A stretch of DNA of 61,015 nucleotides, counting the filler, from Hausera hauseri (lineage: Eukaryota), in assembly GCA_046269625.1 (NCBI GenBank). It is 11 parts of 11 records of this genome, joined end to end, with 100 filler letters (N's around TTAATTAATTAA, not from the genome) between each part and the next. Parts side by side here need not be neighbours in the genome. Positions count along the whole stretch, not along the records: positions 51,531 to 56,298 come from JBJURY010443134.1; 10 more parts are not named here. One strand, 5' to 3'. The position numbers and the translations under genes were made by a program. This document shows, piece by piece, positions 356-56,399 of this stretch. Position 1 is the stretch's first letter; each line of letters starts with the position of its first letter. The notes beneath the pieces are model-generated. The model did no database searches and had not been told where the DNA came from. It saw nothing but the letters and a program-made list of their open reading frames with translations.

Positions 356-2303
356 TAGGAGTACTGTCAAGGTTATTCAGCTCGAATAATAATCTGATGG
401 AAGTGCCAAATAATGCTTCTGCAGGTAAACAGCCTGTAGAAGTTCATGGTGTGTTCCGCCAGCCAAGCAGAACGTATGGAAAGAGTTTAGTCCAACTGCG
501 ATTGGACTCAGCAAGGATTTTTAGGCACGTTTTCATTGTTCGGTTAAAGCGTTTGAGAAGGCCATTCGATTGGGGATGATATGGTAACGTGTGAATGTGG
601 TTAATTCCCAATCAATTGACAAGAGCTTTAAACAAGTTGGATTCGAACTGTGGACATTGACCCGAAATGATGTGGCGAGGTGATCCAAACCTACTGATCC
701 AAGTGCGGATGAAAACGTCTGCGATGGTTTCTGAGTTGGTGCTCCAAAGCGGGGCGGCCTCTGGCTATCGCGAGGAACGGTCCATCATTGTGAGGTTGAA
801 CTGATGGTCGTTGTCTAAGGGTAGTGGGCTTACAAGGTCAATGTGAACAGATTCGAAACGAGACGTGCAGGAAAAATAAAATAGTGGTGGCTTTAAGTGC
901 TTAGTAACTTTGTATTTTTGGCATGCCACACACTGCCTAACCCATGCCTGCACGCCAGAACGCATCGACGGCCATACTACTTGGCGTTGTAAGAGTCGAA
1001 AAGTGGCTTTGACACCGGGATGACGCAACGAATGAATGCTGTTAAATGCTTCTTTTTGAAGCGACTCAGAAAGGATGATTTTAGGATTATTAGGTTTAGA
1101 AGTGACGATGGCCACACCGTCGATGGTTTTGCACAATTTAAAAAACTTAAGAATGTCAGGAGGTGGCTGGTTTTGTTGAAGTTTGGATTGAGGAAAAATT
1201 GGTGTGAAATCAATCGAGCTGACCGATGGGGACAAAATATCAGCTCCTAAATTGTCGACTCCGTTTAAGTTCTTAATTACAAAATTGAATGTGGATAAAT
1301 ACGATATTTGCCTCTCCTGACGTGGAAAAGGCGATTTCATTGTAAATATTTGAAGCAAGGGTTTGTGGTCCGTTTGTATTGTAAACGTTCGTGCGGTTAG
1401 CAGATGTTTAAAGTGTTTTACGGCAAGGACCACTGCAAGCAACTCTCAATCAGAGGTGGAATATCTTTGCTCTTGTGCTGTGAATTTTCGAGAAAAGAAT
1501 TCCAATGGCTCATGGGATCCATTTATAACTTGATGGAGGACAGCACCTGTAGCTGTTGTGGATGCGTCCGTGGTTAAGAAGAGTTCTGCATGGGAGTCTG
1601 AATAGGCCAGGATTTCTACGGTTTTTAAGTTATCTTTGAGGTGATGGAAAGCGTTGACTAGCTTGGCGGTCCATTGAATGGGCTGTTTCTTCTAGCTAGA
1701 GCTTAATGATGCAAATGGAGCGGTTAGAGTGGAACAATGTGGAACGTACTTATGAATATAGTGCAAGGTTCCGAGGAAAAAACGCATCTCTGTTGATGTA
1801 CGTGGTAGTTGTATGTTTTTGAGCTGTGCGATGCGGTCCGACTGAGGTGAATGTCCGGAGGAGCTAATAACATGTCCTAGGAAGTTAACCTTATGTTGAA
1901 AAAAGGAGCATTTAGAAAAACTGATTTGCAAGTTGTTTTGGTGCAAGCGTTGGAAGATCAAACGTAAGTGTTCAGAGTGTTGTTTTGAGGAGGACGATGC
2001 AATTAAGATATCATCAATATAGGGATAGGCGAAGTCTAAACCTGATAGGACTGTATCTATATGCCTTTGGAAGGTCTGCGAAGTGTTACGGAGTCCAAAA
2101 GGCATGAAAATATATTTTAAAAGGCCGAAAGGTGTAACGACAGCCGTTTTTGGAATATCTGCTGGGGCCACCGGGATTTGATGGCATGCATTGTGTAAAT
2201 CAACGCAAGAAAAGATGGTCGAACCATGGAGCCTGTGAAGGATGTCGCTAATTAATAATAGAGGGTAGGCATCCATTGTATTTATGACATTGAGTTGGCG
2301 GTT
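356..2303 (-). mobile_element. Ty3/gypsy pol remnant (RT-RNase H-integrase), pseudogenised
   Basis: RT motifs DAYPL, KTAVVTPFG, MPFGLRN and YIDDILI in 1692-2384; RNase H TDAS and TDHKPL; integrase H-H-C-C (HSLRHPG...CVAC) and HIDLV...MMDR in 765-1442; stops and frameshifts. Same family as the elements on contigs 5, 8 and 9. Confidence 0.95.
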
Positions 2304-2359
2304 CACAAAAGTTCTCAAGAATATGATTTTGTTAGAATTAGTTCCGAGGATTTTAGAAC

Positions 2360-3010
2360 AAGTGGTGCATTTGCAGTTTGACACAGCAGTTTTCTTACGT
2401 CATTTTGAAATCATTGCAAAAAAGTAAACTGACGTAAAAATTTATTGCGTAATAGATATCTTTAATGGATGAGGTAAATTTGCTTACTTCTGCCAATGTT
2501 TAACTGACTTTTTCTTTATCTATTCGGAATGGTCCGGTAATGATACTCCTCGCAATTATCGTTACAGCAAGATGTAAAGTGATCATTAAAAATGCTGAGC
2601 TAATTGCTAAATACCCGATCATTTTCATCGATCCAACATTTGGATTATTTTGTTGCTTGATGATGAACTCAATCGTTTTCGAATTTATTGCCGTCGAACG
2701 ACTGGATGTACAACGATGCTTCAGACGTCACCGATGTCGTAAGTTTACAGCTTTGACTGCTGAAATGGGCATTCGATGATGAATCCACGTTAATGTGATA
2801 AAACCATAACAAAGGACTACAAATCAGTGCTCCCATTAACATTATTGAAACACAATATTTTTATAAAGGTGACATGCAAACTTGGTGCTGGGTATCGTTT
2901 ATTTTGGATCAAAGCGAGAAGCCGATCAATAGACATTGTGAACATAATGTACCAACTGGACAAATATATAACCCTCGAAACGAATTCCAGTGATTCACAC
3001 ATAAACGTCT
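2360..3010 (-). pseudogene. Degenerate rhodopsin-class (class A) peptide GPCR fragment
   Basis: TM3-like LSSWYIMFTMSIDRLLAL; in other frames TM4-like KYCVSIMLMGALICSPLLWFY, TM6-like MIGYLAISSAFLMITLHLAVTII and TM7-like IYYAINFYVSLLFCNDFK; several stops and frameshifts, and TM5 is not found. Confidence 0.6.
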
Positions 3011-3119
3011 AGGTTCGATCTAGCTTCATACTTACTCGTCCTTTGCTTATAAAATCCAAACGAAAAACTATAAAATCGGCCATAAGACATCTGTACATTT
3101 GCTAATCTCCATTAAAAGG

Positions 3120-4568
3120 AGGAAAATGGCGGTTCGGTCCCATCCAGGGGGGATCGATAAATCAATTTTGCACATGTGCCAATCGATAGTGCACCCGGAT
3201 CACTATCGATCAGTAGAGTGCTAGGCAACGGTGCCACTACGCACCGTTGCTAGGGGCACTTTTGCACTTTTGACAAATCGATCGTGGCACAGTTCAGTAT
3301 TAATCGAATCGATCGGCACAAAGTGCTAATCGATAGTGCACATCAGTGCGCATCGATTGGTGCACATAATAGGTGTGCGGCACATATGCAAGTGTGCAAA
3401 AATCAATAATATCGAATTTCCGATAAATGCAATATTGATGAATAGCACTCGGCACCGGGTGAAATCGGTAGCACGCATGACGGGCTATGTGAATGTGCAG
3501 TTAGAATTTAAATCGGTTGATTGGTTTTTGAATAATTCGCAAGTGGGACCGAACCGCCACAGGCCTTTCTGCTATAAATTTGAAATCAATAATATCAATA
3601 TAGCACATGTACTGGCAGGTGCAGTACTTGATATACTATCGTTCAGTGCAGTACTTGATATTGGTGTGATTTTGGATACGGTTGCCAGAGCACTTTTTCA
3701 CTTTTTCACTTTGCACATTTTTGCAGTTGTGCAGCGTAGGAGTGATGGAATTAATCAGGGTCAAGTGCTAATGGATAGAGCACATCAAGATTCACTTTGA
3801 TATGTGGTGTGCAGTGCAAAAACATGTGTGCAAGTGTGCAAAAATTAATAATATCGAATTTCCGATATTTCCAATATAGATGATTGGGACATGTATCCGG
3901 GTGCATTCGAATGGAAACAAGGTGCAGTATGTGACTGTGCAGTTAGAATTTAAATTTATCGATTAGTTATCGATTAATATCGATCGAAAGTGCAAATTGG
4001 CTATATTTTCGACATGATTTTTAAGCCGTAGAAAGCAAAATTCGATCCAACATTGAGCGAGGATAGATAGGAAATCTACTATGGCGAACTTGAATCTCGA
4101 GACAAAAGTTCGAAATTCGAAGATTTTCGAGCTCCAATATCGAAGTCCGAACGTTTCGGAAAACCTAACAGCGGAAATGGATTCCTCGTATTCGAGAACC
4201 CCTACGCATGTAAAAATTAATCTATGAAAATGTACTATATATGCATAAAATCAATATTTCGAAATAAGCAAAATATGTATTTGAAGCCCAATGAAGTGGA
4301 AATCGATAAATCTAATAGTGGGGCTAAATAGTAAGTCATGCATGCCTAATGGGAATATGGCATCACGTATTCAAAATCGAGTTTACAAGTCGAATACTTG
4401 ACTATTCGAACTCGAAAACTCTGTCAAGCATGCATTATGCGAAAAATTTAATGGAGGAATTCGATTTCCCAGGATCAAAAACCTATATGGCAATCAAGAA
4501 AAGCGCAACGCAGTGCATATTGGTGTATAAAAACAAGGTTTTTTAAATATGGTAAAAGTGCTTAATAA
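3120..4568. repeat. Palindrome-rich non-coding repeat, probably a non-autonomous DNA/rolling-circle element
   Basis: Dense GTGCA and ATCGAT motifs; a ~160-nt block duplicated at ~3370-3530 and ~3806-3970; two perfect 10-bp hairpins at 3182-3210 and 3225-3250. Confidence 0.5.
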
Positions 4569-4668
4569 NNNNNNNNNNNNNNNNNNNNNNNNNNNNNNNN
4601 NNNNNNNNNNNNTTAATTAATTAANNNNNNNNNNNNNNNNNNNNNNNNNNNNNNNNNNNNNNNNNNNN
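4569..4668. other. Artificial contig spacer (44N-TTAATTAATTAA-44N); the same spacer occurs at 10299-10398, 16342-16441, 21663-21762, 27774-27873, 32002-32101, 38093-38192, 43425-43524, 51431-51530 and 56299-56398
   Basis: Ten identical 100-nt blocks; the central 12-mer places stop codons in all six frames. Confidence 0.99.
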
Positions 4669-4722
4669 ATTTGAATTTTATTGGGAATTCCTTCATCCAT
4701 TTTCCATAAAATACATGCCGAT

Positions 4723-5835
4723 TTACTTTGGGTGGCTGATTCTGTGATTTGGGCGGATGTTTTCCCCAGCCCATAATGGTACGCTCTCGCATAGTAGGTG
4801 AAATCCGTAATTTGGTGTTGTTGTCTGGTTTACAAGCCTCCGAGTAAATATTATACTCTGGACGAAAGTTGAAATAGGTATGTTTGGTTTCACTGAGAAA
4901 AGAAGGGATAAACAGTGGGAATGCACTCTAATTGGTTGTCTTGTTTCCAGCGTTCGATATGCGTCAAAACGGATTTTATACCAAATGTATGGGTATAATG
5001 TACAACATGACCGAGTATCATTTCTCTTAAGATAACAGTAATATGGTTGTGCTATAACTGCGGAAACAGGATCGAGCCATATATTGATTCCGTAGTTGCC
5101 AGGTAGCAATTTTGTGGTACGGAAATTTATACATGGGATTTTCGGTTTGAGGTTCATACCAGAAATTTCAATATCATTTTCCAAAAATTGAGCAATGAAA
5201 ACATCACACTCTACTCTATCCGGGGTTTCTAACGTTGTCATATCTTGGTAAGTAGGAACATAAAGAGTCATGTTAGGTTCCCAAGTAGCACTATCCCTAT
5301 TGTAAGCCTTCAATACTACATAGTAGGTGTAAGTCATCCTGTAAGTAATTTGACATGTTTTATTATGCCTTTCAGGAATGGTGCAGCTAGCCTATGCATT
5401 ATGGCTTGATATAAAGATAAACTTCACCTCGTGTTGCACAAAGACCGATGGGTGGGTCTTCATGCAAATACTGGGTTTGGTTTTGTCGATGTGAGCAATA
5501 GTAGCGCGTGCGATCAATTCTGTACTAGCCATTAGTATTTTGCCATGATTGGGTTCCATTGTTGAAGTTTTTACGAAAATTGTCAGTAAAATGAACATAA
5601 CAATACGTAAGTGTCTACCCAAGGTGATGTGAACTTGGTAATGTTCATGTTCTGATTTATTCAAAATGCGAGTTTTAAGTAGAGCGGCTACTTTATGTTC
5701 TTCCGAGTTAGTTAAATCGAGATGCATTTTCCGAATAAATTCGTTGTATGATGTAGGGGCTCGAGTGACTCGTTGAACAGAGATCACTTCTTGTTTGTTT
5801 GGTCCTTTCTGGATAAAATGTGTCTGTGAGCGCAC
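4723..5835 (-). pseudogene. Integrase C-terminal extension: hydrophobic segment followed by a Cys- and N-glycan-sequon-containing domain of unknown family
   Basis: ORFs 5392-5835 and 4723-5337 share a frame, separated by one TAG; hydrophobic LRIVMFILLTIFVKTS; sequons NKT, NMT, NDT, NQT. Confidence 0.5.
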
Positions 5836-51530: not shown

Positions 51531-52181
51531 TTACCCCATATAAATGTTATGACTCTTCTACGACAGCCATCTTCAATACCACATCCACGTTATCAACCTG
51601 AACGAATCACTAGATCATTGCCTGAATTGCCAGTGCAGGTACCCACAATAATACCTACACCAACTATTTCGTATAGTCCACCATTACCAATATCTTTACA
51701 AGAAGACTGGTTCCCAGTCTTTAAAAAATGTCCGATTGACCTTATATCTGATCTAGCCCCTCCTGACTTATGGGCAACACTACAATCTCACTACTACGAC
51801 CAACTCCCTACATACGAATGTACTATATGTCTTACCGAAAGAATAACAGTAGTTCAGTTTCAATGCAACCACAAATTATGTGCAACCTGTTTTAACAAAC
51901 TTCGATCTCAATCCCTCAAATCGATCAATCCAGAAGATGCTCTTCAAATGACTTTTCAAAACGGTATCTCATGCCCATACTGCCGACAACCATCAATTTA
52001 CTACCATTTTTCCTATATCTATGACAATCGAACTCAACGATTATGCCATTGGATGAATCAAATAAACGATGCAACATTGACAGTAAGACCCCGAAATCTC
52101 AGTTTTATCGATGTCAGTACCCAGAGTGATCCGGAGGACCGAATCCTTTTCAAAGGGGGGAGAAATGTTGAGATACTTTAA
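51531..52181 (+). CDS. Pro-rich linker plus C3HC4 RING domain ORF ending across the PPT/LTR junction; open to the contig's 5' edge
   Basis: CTIC-x11-CNH-x2-CATC-x27-CPYC at 51819-51983; ends PEDRILFKGGRNV; no stop between 51531 and the first ATG. Confidence 0.88.
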   Translation, partial: LPHINVMTLLRQPSSIPHPRYQPERITRSLPELPVQVPTIIPTPTISYSPPLPISLQEDWFPVFKKCPIDLISDLAPPDLWATLQSHYYDQLPTYECTICLTERITVVQFQCNHKLCATCFNKLRSQSLKSINPEDALQMTFQNGISCPYCRQPSIYYHFSYIYDNRTQRLCHWMNQINDATLTVRPRNLSFIDVSTQSDPEDRILFKGGRNVEIL

Positions 52182-52600
52182 CAAACAATATTCTGTATAA
52201 CTTCTCCATGATTGAGATACTTTAACAACCTCTTTTATTTAGTTGTTAAGCCTCCATGATAGGCATTTTTATTACGCTGTTGATTGTAGATTATTTGTGA
52301 ACCTTTTCGTTCTACAACCACTTTTGTAACCATCATGAGACTTTTCGTTCTACAATCACTTTTGTAACCATCACGAAATAACAGATTATTTTAAATTGTA
52401 AATTAGTCACTCACTTAATTTTAGAATTGGATTTAAGAATTCGTCAGAATTAGTCACTCACTTGATTTAAGAAATTAGATTTAAGAATTCGTCAGATTGA
52501 CGTCATCCACAGGAATTTAAAATAACAAATAGAATTAAAAATAGAAATTTATAATCAAATCGATAGGTATAAATACGTGAAAACATTTGCAAACGACACA
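52152..52600 (+). promoter_or_regulatory. PPT (52152-52165) and U3-like start of a 3' LTR with duplicated motifs, CRE and TATA box
   Basis: AAAGGGGGGAGAAA|TGTTGAGATA; three pairs of direct repeats (from ~52168/52212, ~52303/52341, ~52401/52449); TTAGTCA twice; TGACGTCA at ~52497; TATAAATA at ~52568. Confidence 0.7.
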
Positions 52601-53968
52601 CTTTTTTCTTCATACATAATCCGACGTAGTAAAATTTGAAGCGTTCTGGTAGCTTCTATAAATTATTAGAATAATCTTTAATTTTATAGAGTAGTCAATC
52701 ATACCGAACTGATCATTCATTTCTGAGAATAATTGAAATCTAATTCTATACCTACTACTATCCATATGGCTGCACAGAGAAATCCTAATTTTGATTCCCT
52801 TGAAAGTAATGATGGTAAGCAATTGATTTGTCATTGAGTTTGTATCTATTGATGTATTTATTTTGTTATACAATAAATTATTCTGAAGATAAATCCAAGA
52901 GACTCAAAATGATAATTGAAAATCGGATTGGAGTCTTAATGAATTAAAATTTGTGTTATAATAGATGATTTATTCAGGTGTTCTAAATTATTTATTAAAA
53001 GGAATTGCTAAAATCCATTCCAAGAAATGAGTCGAAAGGCGAATTGTTTGTTAGAAACGAACTGATCATCGATCAATGTTCATTTTACAAAGGACCCGAC
53101 GTGCAATAGTGGCTCGGCTCAGCAGCTTTAATGAAGGAAAATATGAAGAGATACGGAGAAATTATACAAACGGAGATGCGACACTCTGTGTTGGGGATTG
53201 GGTTATTTTATATATATCCGGGATGGTGAGGAAATATCGTAATGTAATTTTGTCTGCAATTTATCTGAATCCAGTGATTTCTAATTTGATAAAATATTTT
53301 ATGTGTTTAATGCCCTTGAATTATTCAATCTATTAATTAGGATTTAATGAGTTTGAGGGTTACACCTTGTACGAATCGTCGGGAGATTTGAGTATTATAG
53401 ATAATGTGGATGGTTTTATGTAATAATCTCCTTTAGAAGTTTAAAAGAAAGGAAAAGAAGAAAGTTGATTGTATTTTTGTATCATTATGCCCCTTAAATG
53501 AAAATCAATTTTTTTAATTAAATAAAGTATCAAACAAAAGCTTTGAACAATAAGTGATTTAATGTATTGGGGAATCATTTAGATCTTTGACGATGTTTTT
53601 AAATTTTGTGTTCAACCGATGGCCAGGTATAGTATTACGAATGGTTGGTTTCAATGTTGTTTCAAGATTTACTGATGTGAACTTCGGTCGTAGCAAGGAA
53701 TTGATGGGAGGCTATCCAAGTCATCTATATGAAACAAAGGCGGTTTAACAGCTGAATGCAATCGACAACTACAAGGAGGTGAATTCGGAATTACCAGGAT
53801 TGATTGCGTCGGGGTCACTCAGTCAGTTGTGGTCATGATGTATATGTATATGAGGGTATGTATGTACATGTACGGGGATGGCAAATTTTGTTTACCTGGT
53901 GATCTGGCGTTGATGTCAATAAAAATAAATTAAATAGGTCAGTACTTATATTGTAGCTCTCCAACAAT

Positions 53969-54175
53969 ATATTAGAGTTGAATTACGCAGTAGATATATA
54001 TTGATAAAACTCTTTTATTATTTAATGAATATTTCCGATAAGATTTTATTATAATAATTATCCTTGTGACAATGTATTAGAGTTGAACAGCAAAGTAGAC
54101 ATATCGTGGTATAACTCTTTTTATTATTTAATGAGTATTCCTGATAGGATTTTATTATGATAATTATCCTTGTGA
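53969..54175. repeat. Two-copy ~105-nt tandem duplication
   Basis: TATTAGAGTTGAA...AACTCTTTTTATTATTTAATGA...ATAATTATCCTTGTGA occurs twice. Confidence 0.85.
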
Positions 54176-54974
54176 GTGATATCTGCATGTGATAACAAAT
54201 TGGTTCGAATTGGATCTAGTCTCGTACACTTCATGAAGATATGAATATGCACCGACCCTTGAGAAATTAGCGTTAACAAAAAACTTAGTTGTTATGACTG
54301 TTAGAAGACGTTGATAACAGGAGATTTAAATTGTGGGACCTATGTATTTATGTAGCTCAGAATTTCAAATTGAGTGGAGCGATTGATTGTTTGAACTCTC
54401 GTTATGAGACTAATTGTTCAGAATATTTCTCTTGTTCCATTAAAATATTATTAGAGGAAAGAAAATGAGGTGTAGGAACTAATAAAGGTATGAAAATAAA
54501 TGTTGCTTGTAGAAAATAGCTCTAACAATGTTAAGGCTTTATTCTTAAAAGAATGAATGCACGGTATGAGTCAGATACCAGAGTGACCATATGACCTAAC
54601 AAGATGATTCAAAGATCAGAGTAGAAAACCTAACGAATAGAAGAATAATAGACGACACAATAACCAAATAACAACCTTGGGCGCAGATTACCTTGGTAAT
54701 CCTACCGCCACCGAACAAACACACCTTCAGGTTACATATATGTTGGAGGATAAAGGAAGTTAAAGGAAAAGACGAATACAATACAGGAGTTAAGCGAATT
54801 ACAATGGTTTAATGGACGTCATGAAAGCAGTTGTATATATCAAAGATATTACAATAATCCAACATATAAACTGGTGCCCCGAGTGAGGACACCTTTAGAT
54901 TATACAAGAAAAGATTGTGATTAAAATGATAACTGATAATTTTAGGAAAATTTTACCTGGATTTTGAAATTTAG

Positions 54975-55285
54975 ACAGCAAGTACGGACCAGTGCAGTGT
55001 GAAATTTGCTTTGGACCACTGGGTCGGCATTATGCACTTTTTCGGTGCACACACATTATGTGTGTTAATTGCGCAGACCGTTGGCTATCGAAGAGCCAAA
55101 CGTGCCCCTTCTGCAGAAGAAAAATAAGCTCATATCAGTGTCGGGGAGCCACTGTGGTGGTAATTCCAGATGATGAAGAAGATGAACAAGAAAATGAAAT
55201 GGAGGAGGACCCGAATGAACTTTATGTATTAGGACCAAATCAACTTGTGCAAATGCCTATTTCATTATGTATTAAATACAGATAG
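54975..55285 (+). CDS. Small C3HC4 RING protein or exon with acidic tail
   Basis: CEIC...CTH..CVNC...W.....CPFCRR; no ATG before the RING; AG acceptor at 54973-54974. Confidence 0.8.
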
Positions 55286-55489
55286 TATAGAATTGAGTTA
55301 TGGGCTGATGGTTTTGAAGCTGTTTAAATTAGAATGAGTGATGAATTAGTTGATCTAAATGAACAATATGTATATGTCTTAAGGAAGTGGTCTGCAAACC
55401 ATGAGCGGGATAAAAGGAGGGAAATGACAAATAATATTGATTCAATAAATTAAAGTTTAAGGAATTGGATTGAGTAATATTGATTTTAG

Positions 55490-55725
55490 GTTGCATCATC
55501 TGTAAAAGATTTCCGGAAACTTGGGATGAGGAAGAGAATCCCTGTCCCCTATGTTATTTAGTGGAGAAATTAAGTCAACCAGAAGATTTATTCGAGTGCG
55601 GTCATTGCGGGGAAGAGGCTAACTTAGGCTTAATGACGTTGGATGAAGATTACCGTTTATTATGTCCTGTTTGCGCCTTGTCGTGGAATGATTTCGAAGA
55701 AATTAACAAATTGATTAACTTATGA
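55490..55725 (+). CDS. Small acidic protein or exon with four CxxC pairs
   Basis: CIIC, CPLC, CGHC, CPVC; preceded by TTTTAG (55488-55489) and followed by AATAAA. Confidence 0.6.
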
Positions 55726-55790
55726 AATTTGTAATGGAAATAAATAAATTGATTATTGTACCTAGTGAAATTTGGTTTCGTTTATTGTAG

Positions 55791-56203
55791 AAAGATGCCC
55801 TATCTGTTTGGATAACATGGCATGCGAAAGGACGGTGCTACCATGCCAACACCAGTATTGTACTCAGTGCATTAATACTTGGTTAAATGAACAGAGTAAT
55901 TGCCCTTGTTGTCGACGAGTTTGCACGTTTTGCTGGGTATGCCTTAAATTGGTGACAGATAATCTGATTGTTCTATCGTGTCGACATGTGTTCTGCCAAC
56001 CGTGTATTTTGGAGTATTTGGGATGCTGTCAATGTTGTCCTTACTGTCTTGAATCAGTGGACTTTTATGTTGCAGAAGGAGTGATCACATATCTAAATAT
56101 GGATAATCGCTCATCCATAATATTGGTAATTGATGAGGACGATGGCAGTTGGCCGGAACAGTGGAGAAACCCATCACCTTATACGATATTAGACTTTAAA
56201 TAA
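55791..56203 (+). CDS. Tandem double C3HC4 RING protein or exon
   Basis: CPIC...CQH..CTQC..W....CPCCR immediately followed by CWVC...CRH..CQPC...CPYC; preceded by TTTATTGTAG (55789-55790); stop overlaps AATAAA. Confidence 0.82.
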
Positions 56204-56399
56204 AATTGAATTATTAATAAAATTAATTGTGGTAAATTGTTCGTTTCGATTTCTTAAGGTTATTCCCCCAATTTGAATTCCATATCTATATTATCTCANN
56301 NNNNNNNNNNNNNNNNNNNNNNNNNNNNNNNNNNNNNNNNNNTTAATTAATTAANNNNNNNNNNNNNNNNNNNNNNNNNNNNNNNNNNNNNNNNNNNNC

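Follow-up and report, generated by a model that had tools for sequence, protein, structure and literature searches.

A RING finger ORF interlocked with a candidate polypurine tract at the end of a high-copy, probably LTR-type element in Hausera hauseri

Viruses encode RING-type ubiquitin ligases (E3), for example ICP0 of herpesviruses and IE2/PE38 of baculoviruses. Among mobile elements, the chromoviruses are Ty3/gypsy elements with a chromodomain at the C-terminus of their integrase (PMC3248453, citing Gao et al. 2008), and Ty3/gypsy elements of orchids carry an added open reading frame (ORF) for an AlkB-type N6-methyladenosine (m6A) demethylase, which was called a rare event (PMC9289625). 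OTU or Ulp1 proteases and PHD fingers occur in the Ginger1, Helitron and Mutator transposons, where they were proposed to take part in transposition (PMC2836005), and RAG1 has an N-terminal RING (PMC10799480 and its reference 33). In the full-text literature, within the words searched, we found no long terminal repeat (LTR) element described as encoding a RING. Here we describe a piece of 4,768 bases (positions 51531-56298; ~33% G+C; JBJURY010443134.1) of the Hausera hauseri assembly GCA_046269625.1. It forms part of a stretch of 61,015 nucleotides joined from 11 records (the window), to whose numbering all positions refer. The piece opens with the end of a RING finger ORF, and on balance we favour the view that it is an accessory ORF with several RING modules, which sits at the 3′ end of an LTR-type retroelement of very high copy number and interlocks with that element's polypurine tract (PPT).

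The RING ORF and the tract beneath its end

The frame is open for 216 codons from the piece edge (51531-52178) and closes with a TAA stop at 52179-52181. Since about 7% of codons are expected to be stops at this base composition, we estimate the chance of an open frame of this length at ~1e-7. The eight zinc ligands of its RING (C97, C100, C112, H114, C117, C120, C148 and C151) follow the C3HC4 order and spacing, C-x2-C-x11-C-x-H-x2-C-x2-C-x27-C-x2-C, and all eight are invariant in the relatives P0001, P0005 and P0006 described below. In a Pfam scan of all frame segments of at least 45 amino acids in the piece, this RING exceeded the cut-offs of both PF00097 (23.5 bits, cut-off 21) and PF13920 (27.7 bits, cut-off 27). 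The best E-value belonged to PF24921, the XB3/XBAT31-type RING, which is also long-looped, with a score below that profile's cut-off of 50. The nearest solved structure is the RING of TRAF6, a weak match (E ~1e-3) whose first half aligns to the C-P-I-C-L of TRAF6. The protein atlas returned generic RING clusters only, with scores below 0.9. An intact C3HC4 RING ORF with a frame open to the contig edge, as first described in the initial annotation of this DNA, is thus borne out by the frame, the ligands and the profile scores.

Active RINGs hold and activate ubiquitin-conjugating enzymes (E2) by way of an Ile or Leu near the first Cys pair, together with a Pro that follows the seventh ligand and a basic residue that follows the eighth. 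The ORF reads C-T-I-C-L at the first Cys pair and C-P-Y-C-R at the last, and so has the Ile/Leu, Pro and basic E2-contact residues. Judged by its intact, conserved RING and these residues, the protein would be active as a ligase. The most conserved part of the ORF is the 46-residue extension behind the RING (Table 1), the RING itself being 51-59% identical to its relatives. A further zinc site might be made up of the invariant C67, H159, C172 and H173.

A purine tract underlies the closing codons of the ORF, which is an unusual arrangement, and the tail of the ORF, PEDRILFKGGRNVEIL, is encoded across this tract (52152-52165) and the TGTTG at 52166-52170. The tract thus lies where a PPT would be expected, directly 5′ of a TG-starting LTR, with the TG at 52166. 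A view of copy number was obtained by matching the Logan contigs of two public runs to the piece: X1, and X2, which bears a second organism label. All depth figures given here are summed contig depths, not copy numbers. In X1, 5,423 contigs matched the piece, at a likeness of at least 99% in 550 cases, 95-99% in 1,138, 90-95% in 2,049 and lower in 1,686, so that the copies span from at least 99% to below 90% likeness. The family is also carried by 553 contigs of X2 and therefore occurs under two organism labels. The very high-copy repeat ends at 52169, four bases into TGTTG, and 56 contigs diverge from the piece starting at this position. Their continuations are loosely alike, the consensus of each run beginning with AGG and having TTAATTA a few bases on, and the continuation in the piece itself is a further diverged version of the same start. 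Alike continuations behind a conserved coding end have the look of a fast-evolving LTR start. The very high repeat number and the boundary at 52169 also rule out a single-copy host exon.

Protein relatives were sought among 1.84 billion representative proteins, without a length limit, and in a word-indexed homologue search. The representatives gave three matches, P0001 (425 aa, 61% identity), P0002 (179 aa) and P0003, of which P0003 was rejected as an unrelated generic RING. The word-indexed search gave no match for the 216-aa ORF or for a second RING ORF of the piece (ORF c, below), and with P0001 as query it added P0006 (383 aa) only. All of the relatives are proteins from ENA metagenome contigs; a metagenome contig collection searched by protein and by tract pattern gave no match, nor did scans of viral and prokaryote genome contig collections. 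The ORF of the piece, P0001 and P0006 are mutually 58-63% identical and all intact. In P0002 the N-terminal 120 residues do not align and the last 58 match; it is probably a frameshifted, decayed copy, which would mean that decayed copies also exist.

The ends of these proteins bear directly on the tract. P0001 and P0006 end in FQRGEKC, the ORF of the piece in FKGGRNVEIL and P0002 in FKGGRNVRVC. By tblastn, FQRGEKC is encoded at 100% by nucleotides 52148-52168 of the piece in the other frame, and the next codon, extending to 52171, is TGA. In four independent ORFs the stop thus lies no more than five codons from the tract, in two frames and on compatible nucleotides. Because P0001 and P0006 read the same nucleotides in another frame, the tract appears to be conserved at the DNA level, which is what would be expected of a polypurine tract, and this frame-independent closure reads as the signature of a cis-acting PPT and LTR end lying beneath the end of a gene. 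Given that the repeat stops at 52169 and that the same nucleotides close the ORFs of relatives in a different frame, the PPT/TG junction is more than a chance motif, and the earlier reading of the last codons as a PPT and a TGTTG LTR start is supported.

The protein appears to be conserved as well. Among the X1 copies, 9 of the 12 best-supported differences in the RING ORF are third-position synonymous (binomial P ~0.004 against one third), such best-supported sites being a biased sample and no substitute for a ratio of non-synonymous to synonymous rates (dN/dS). These independent copies agree with the earlier observation, made on two copies within the window, that differences are mostly synonymous.

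Table 1. Features of the piece and summed X1 depth by interval (window coordinates)
Feature	Position	Strand	Remarks
C-terminal 216 codons and stop of multi-RING ORF	51531..52181	+	cut at 5′ edge of piece; 59-63% identity to P0001 residues 207-424
Pro-rich linker, aa 1-58	51531..51704	+	53-62% identity to relatives
C3HC4 RING finger, aa 97-151	51819..51983	+	Pfam scores over cut-offs; 27-residue loop before last Cys pair
Post-RING extension, aa 154-199, 46 residues	51990..52127	+	70-80% identity; H159, C172 and H173 invariant
Purine tract, read as PPT	52152..52165	+	unique 19-mer with TGTTG; inside last codons of ORF
Candidate single LTR, 2,699 bp, TGTTG...CAACA	52166..54864	+	one copy visible; inferred extent
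Tandem duplication, 38 bp x2	52298-52373		low-copy stretch
Tandem duplication, 48 bp x2	52401-52496		low-copy stretch
TATA-like motif, TATAAATA	52567-52574	+	inside candidate LTR
Tandem duplication, 106 bp x2	53964-54175		low-copy stretch
LTR-type 3′ terminus, CCAACA	54859..54864	+	inverted complement of TGTTG at 52166; X2 contig match starts exactly at 54859
Primer-binding-site-like 18-mer led by TGG	54872..54889	+	7 nt past CA end; within very high-copy peak at ~54800-54900
RING ORF a, stop-to-stop 105 aa, acidic tail	54968..55285	+	PF13639 38.5 bits, PF13920 37.4 bits
ORF b, four CxxC-type pairs (degenerate RING or zinc ribbon)	55474..55725	+	sub-threshold Pfam matches only
ORF c, two tandem C3HC4 RINGs	55769..56203	+	PF13923 51 bits, PF00097 49 bits, two stretches each
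Summed depth 17,000-41,000 (X1)	51531-52166		
Summed depth 768 (X1)	52167-52325		
Summed depth 9-47 (X1)	52326-54710		

The candidate LTR and the RING ORFs beyond it

From 52170 to ~54790 the piece is low-copy and AT-rich. Ten frame segments of this middle part gave no Pfam match, and a host gene there is therefore not supported. It holds three two-copy tandem duplications (Table 1), of a kind often seen in the U3 regions of LTRs. A contig of X2 matches 53648-53842 at 97%, and the X2 depth rises to 22 in the bin 53757-53915, with most of the low-copy bins around 53648-53915 reading zero in X2; this part would be a conserved or repeated island.

An inverted-repeat search for the far end of the LTR was, on its own, ambiguous. 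We accepted CCAACA at 54859-54864 as this end only jointly with the TGG-led 18-mer behind it, which resembles a primer-binding site (PBS), and with the peak of depth at the same place. Point depths are low (36-42 at both 54753 and 54773, 210 at 54912), yet the bin means reach 2,148 over 54711-54869 and 5,187 over 54870-55028, which implies a narrow segment of ~100 bases that matches the RING ORF in abundance. If the 18-mer is taken to pair with a transfer RNA (tRNA) 3′ end, that end would carry CCA, an A discriminator, C72 and C61, in agreement with the general tRNA pattern (weak evidence). No tRNA gene occurs in the piece, and a literature search for the 18-mer string returned unrelated primers only. 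The order of PPT, TG...CA and TGG-led site on one strand most likely reflects a single LTR of 2,699 bp, with the 3′ end of an internal region before it and the 5′ start of an internal region behind it. Reading through an LTR in this manner would have one of three causes, namely an LTR shared by tandem elements, a circle with one LTR, or an assembler path through a collapsed LTR. Both ends of the contig lie in high-copy sequence, which suits the last of these.

The same interval could instead hold parts of two separate LTR elements, the first with its 3′ LTR starting at 52166, then low-copy DNA, and then a second element with a short 5′ LTR, such as 54750-54864. A perfect 7-bp inverted match (TGTTGGA/TCCAACA) does bound these 115 bp just before the PBS-like site, the repeated blocks on the two sides differ in abundance, and 53648-53842 is 97% identical in the second organism. 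However, the depth of 36-42 at 54753/54773 is the same as over the 200 nt upstream, so that there is no step at 54750, and the sequence from 52166 onward is similar to 54750-54864 in TGTTG only. We consider a pair of elements unlikely, although it is the best placed of the alternatives. The short 115-bp LTR itself was ranked lower for want of a depth step at 54750.

Beyond the single candidate LTR, ORFs a-c (Table 1) begin ~80 nt past the PBS-like site, where gag would be expected. The block that they occupy is also repeated, with a depth of 450-5,000, and is about tenfold rarer than the 3′ RING block. Of the differences listed within ORFs a-c, again the best-supported sites only, 9/17 are synonymous, including 4/4 in ORF a. 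The block shares generic RING similarity only with the N-terminal half of P0001.

A non-autonomous LTR element that encodes RING proteins only, from PBS to PPT, and is copied in trans by an autonomous partner would account for several of these features. It would explain RING ORFs within ~80 nt of the PBS-like site, at the place of gag, as well as the fact that neither the 4.8 kb nor the relative of 425 aa shows any gag or pol, and the piece can indeed be read as an internal 3′ end, an LTR and an internal 5′ start. Against this, the middle of the element lies outside the piece, the 5′ block is about tenfold rarer than the 3′ block, and the 5′ block and the N-terminal half of P0001 are alike only as generic RINGs. 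We regard an element of RINGs only as distinctly unlikely.

Several further observations concern this half of the piece. The acidic tail of ORF a, DDEEDEQENE, is encoded by a 12-nt periodic repeat at 55168-55198. GC skew flips sign along the piece, from -0.41 to -0.14 over 51531-52330, which holds the RING ORF, to +0.1 to +0.4 from ~52900 to 56298, the downstream RING ORFs included. TAG acceptor-like sites lie at 54969-54974, 55484-55489 and 55785-55790, 7-24 nt before ORFs a-c, with the G at codon position 1. Upstream, at 52766-52814, 16 codons led by an ATG are followed by a single extra G and then by GTAAGC, a candidate splice donor at 52815. Given this extra G and the phases of the TAG sites, splicing one shared leader to any of ORFs a-c would keep the reading frame. 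The chance odds of such agreement are ~1 in 8, and it is a lead and no more.

Upstream of the linker and the nature of the element

The initial annotation offered two arrangements for the RING ORF, an in-frame fusion to Pol or integrase through the Pro-rich linker, or an accessory ORF. The relatives reach beyond the 5′ edge of the piece and bear on this choice. In P0001 and P0006 a further 206 residues precede the linker and hold two more Cys/His-rich RING-like modules, the first matching RING profiles with one ligand lost and the second having a conserved CC-x-C...CC...C-x2-C...C-x2-C-x2-C pattern. No signature of integrase, RNase H or reverse transcriptase was found in this upstream part of either protein. 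Moreover, P0001, P0004 and P0005, which come from three contigs, all begin with M-E-C, two residues before the first module.

A fusion to the C-terminus of Pol or integrase, with the RING in the place of the chromovirus chromodomain, would draw on the frame being open to the edge of the piece; the first module of P0001 begins at residue 3 and gene callers start at ATG, so that the frame could run further upstream. The 206 residues in question, however, are RING-like modules and have no integrase signature, the M-E-C start recurs on three contigs, and the search of the 1.84 billion representatives, unlimited in length, gave matches of 161-425 aa only and no long polyprotein with this domain. 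As far as the relatives reach, no chromovirus-like C-terminal integrase fusion was found. With RING-like modules and an M-E-C start in its place, the fusion of integrase, linker and RING is improbable, and of the two arrangements first offered it is the accessory ORF that is favoured. Nothing seen in the piece or in the relatives links the RING ORF to integrase or to the Ty3/gypsy group.

That no retroelement is involved, and that a tract and a TG merely coincide with a hugely expanded host RING family or with the end of a mobile element of another class, for instance a DNA transposon, a Helitron or a Maverick, would suit the lack of any reverse transcriptase seen, the atlas look-alikes (generic short RINGs, many of them of large DNA viruses and Polinton-like viruses) and the abrupt stop of the repeat at 52169 with varied continuations, but this is very improbable and the least likely of the alternatives, as the tract and TGTTGA are conserved across different reading frames, the continuations past 52169 resemble each other and are not random flanks, and a second peak of very high copy number holds a mirrored CA end and a TGG-led site, which follow on the same strand in the order expected.

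The host of the ORF is thus probably a highly repeated mobile element, an LTR retroelement. We infer this identity from the two junctions, the copy-number signature and the frame-independent tract, and not from any reverse transcriptase.

A number of points weigh against an accessory RING ORF in an LTR retroelement. There was no Pfam match to gag, protease, reverse transcriptase, RNase H or integrase in the 4.8-kb piece or in P0001, P0002 and P0006; the middle of the element lies beyond the piece, and this blank therefore does not exclude gag-pol there. One LTR is visible in the 4.8 kb, with neither an LTR pair nor a target-site duplication, and an LTR of 2.7 kb with a low-copy interior between very high-copy flanks is unusual. 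The PBS-like 18-mer begins 7 nt past the CA end, a spacing that we judge to be longer than usual. The tenfold gap in depth means that the two repeated blocks may be different families, and none of ORFs a, b and c has an ATG ahead of its first zinc pair. An AlphaFold2 model of the RING ORF, built from a 4-sequence alignment, reached a mean predicted local distance difference test (pLDDT) score of only 31.7. Specialists would be surprised by a retroelement ORF that bears a RING, interlocks with the PPT and occurs in thousands of copies, and the missing link to gag-pol leaves this short of a firm claim.

If the ORF is indeed the accessory gene of an LTR element, the following arrangement can be proposed. 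The full-length protein, of at least 425 aa, would consist of two degenerate RING-like modules, the Pro-rich linker, the canonical C3HC4 RING and the conserved 46-residue extension. Its last codons would overlap the PPT, with the frame closing no more than five codons inside the LTR. Tract and TG start would be conserved at the nucleotide level for their part in priming the plus strand and in making the LTR end, and the protein would be kept by purifying selection on those lineages that go on copying. The canonical RING may recruit a host E2 and so give the element a ubiquitin ligase of its own, in which case the degenerate modules could supply the inactive half of a paired RING and the extension could serve in substrate binding or dimerisation. 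The piece would then run through one LTR (52166-54864) into the PBS and 5′ start of a like element, which would open with three RING ORFs and no recognisable gag. That the ligase is aimed at silencing factors or at chromatin targeting, as was suggested from the start, is speculation.

As a more tentative extension, which we hold to be possible and well short of even, the piece may come from a very high-copy, recently active LTR lineage whose internal region is bracketed by RING ORFs or has only RING ORFs. It would hold about seven zinc modules, three to four after the PBS in place of gag and three ending in the PPT, as ligases kept by purifying selection. These would act in counter-defence, with silencing or restriction by the host as its target, or would be the RING cargo of a non-autonomous element, copied by the thousand.

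Comparison with known systems

LTR retroelements rarely fix extra domains, and the chromodomain and the AlkB ORF each revealed dealings of the element with its host. A RING ORF in thousands of copies, conserved as protein and interlocked with a PPT, would be a direct handle on the use of host ubiquitin by retroelements. It might, as in many viruses, rid the element of restriction or silencing factors, or it might guide integration. It also calls for caution in genome annotation: where repeats abound, what looks like one of the large 'RING families' may be cargo of transposons.

With the chromoviruses, the locus shares an extra non-enzymatic module at the 3′ end of the coding region, beside the PPT, in a high-copy LTR element. 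It differs in that the module is a RING and not a chromodomain, with three or more zinc modules over at least 425 aa, and in that no integrase is seen upstream, the relatives suggesting a separate ORF. The orchid AlkB elements are alike in that an LTR lineage fixed an added ORF with an enzymatic domain of host type, of the ubiquitin ligase type here and an RNA demethylase there. For the orchid elements the whole structure was documented (LTRs, PBS, PPT and gag-pol), whereas here the middle of the element lies outside the piece. As in Ginger1, Helitron and Mutator, a mobile element would encode part of the ubiquitin/SUMO pathway; those, however, are DNA transposons whose proteases remove ubiquitin or SUMO, whereas here the end is of the retroelement type and the domain would attach ubiquitin. 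Lastly, the locus has in common with the viral RING ligases and RAG1 a RING of a selfish or virus-like element that is thought to redirect host ubiquitination. It shows no sequence relationship to them beyond the RING fold, its best matches being the XB3/XBAT31-type RING, below the Pfam cut-off, and TRAF6.
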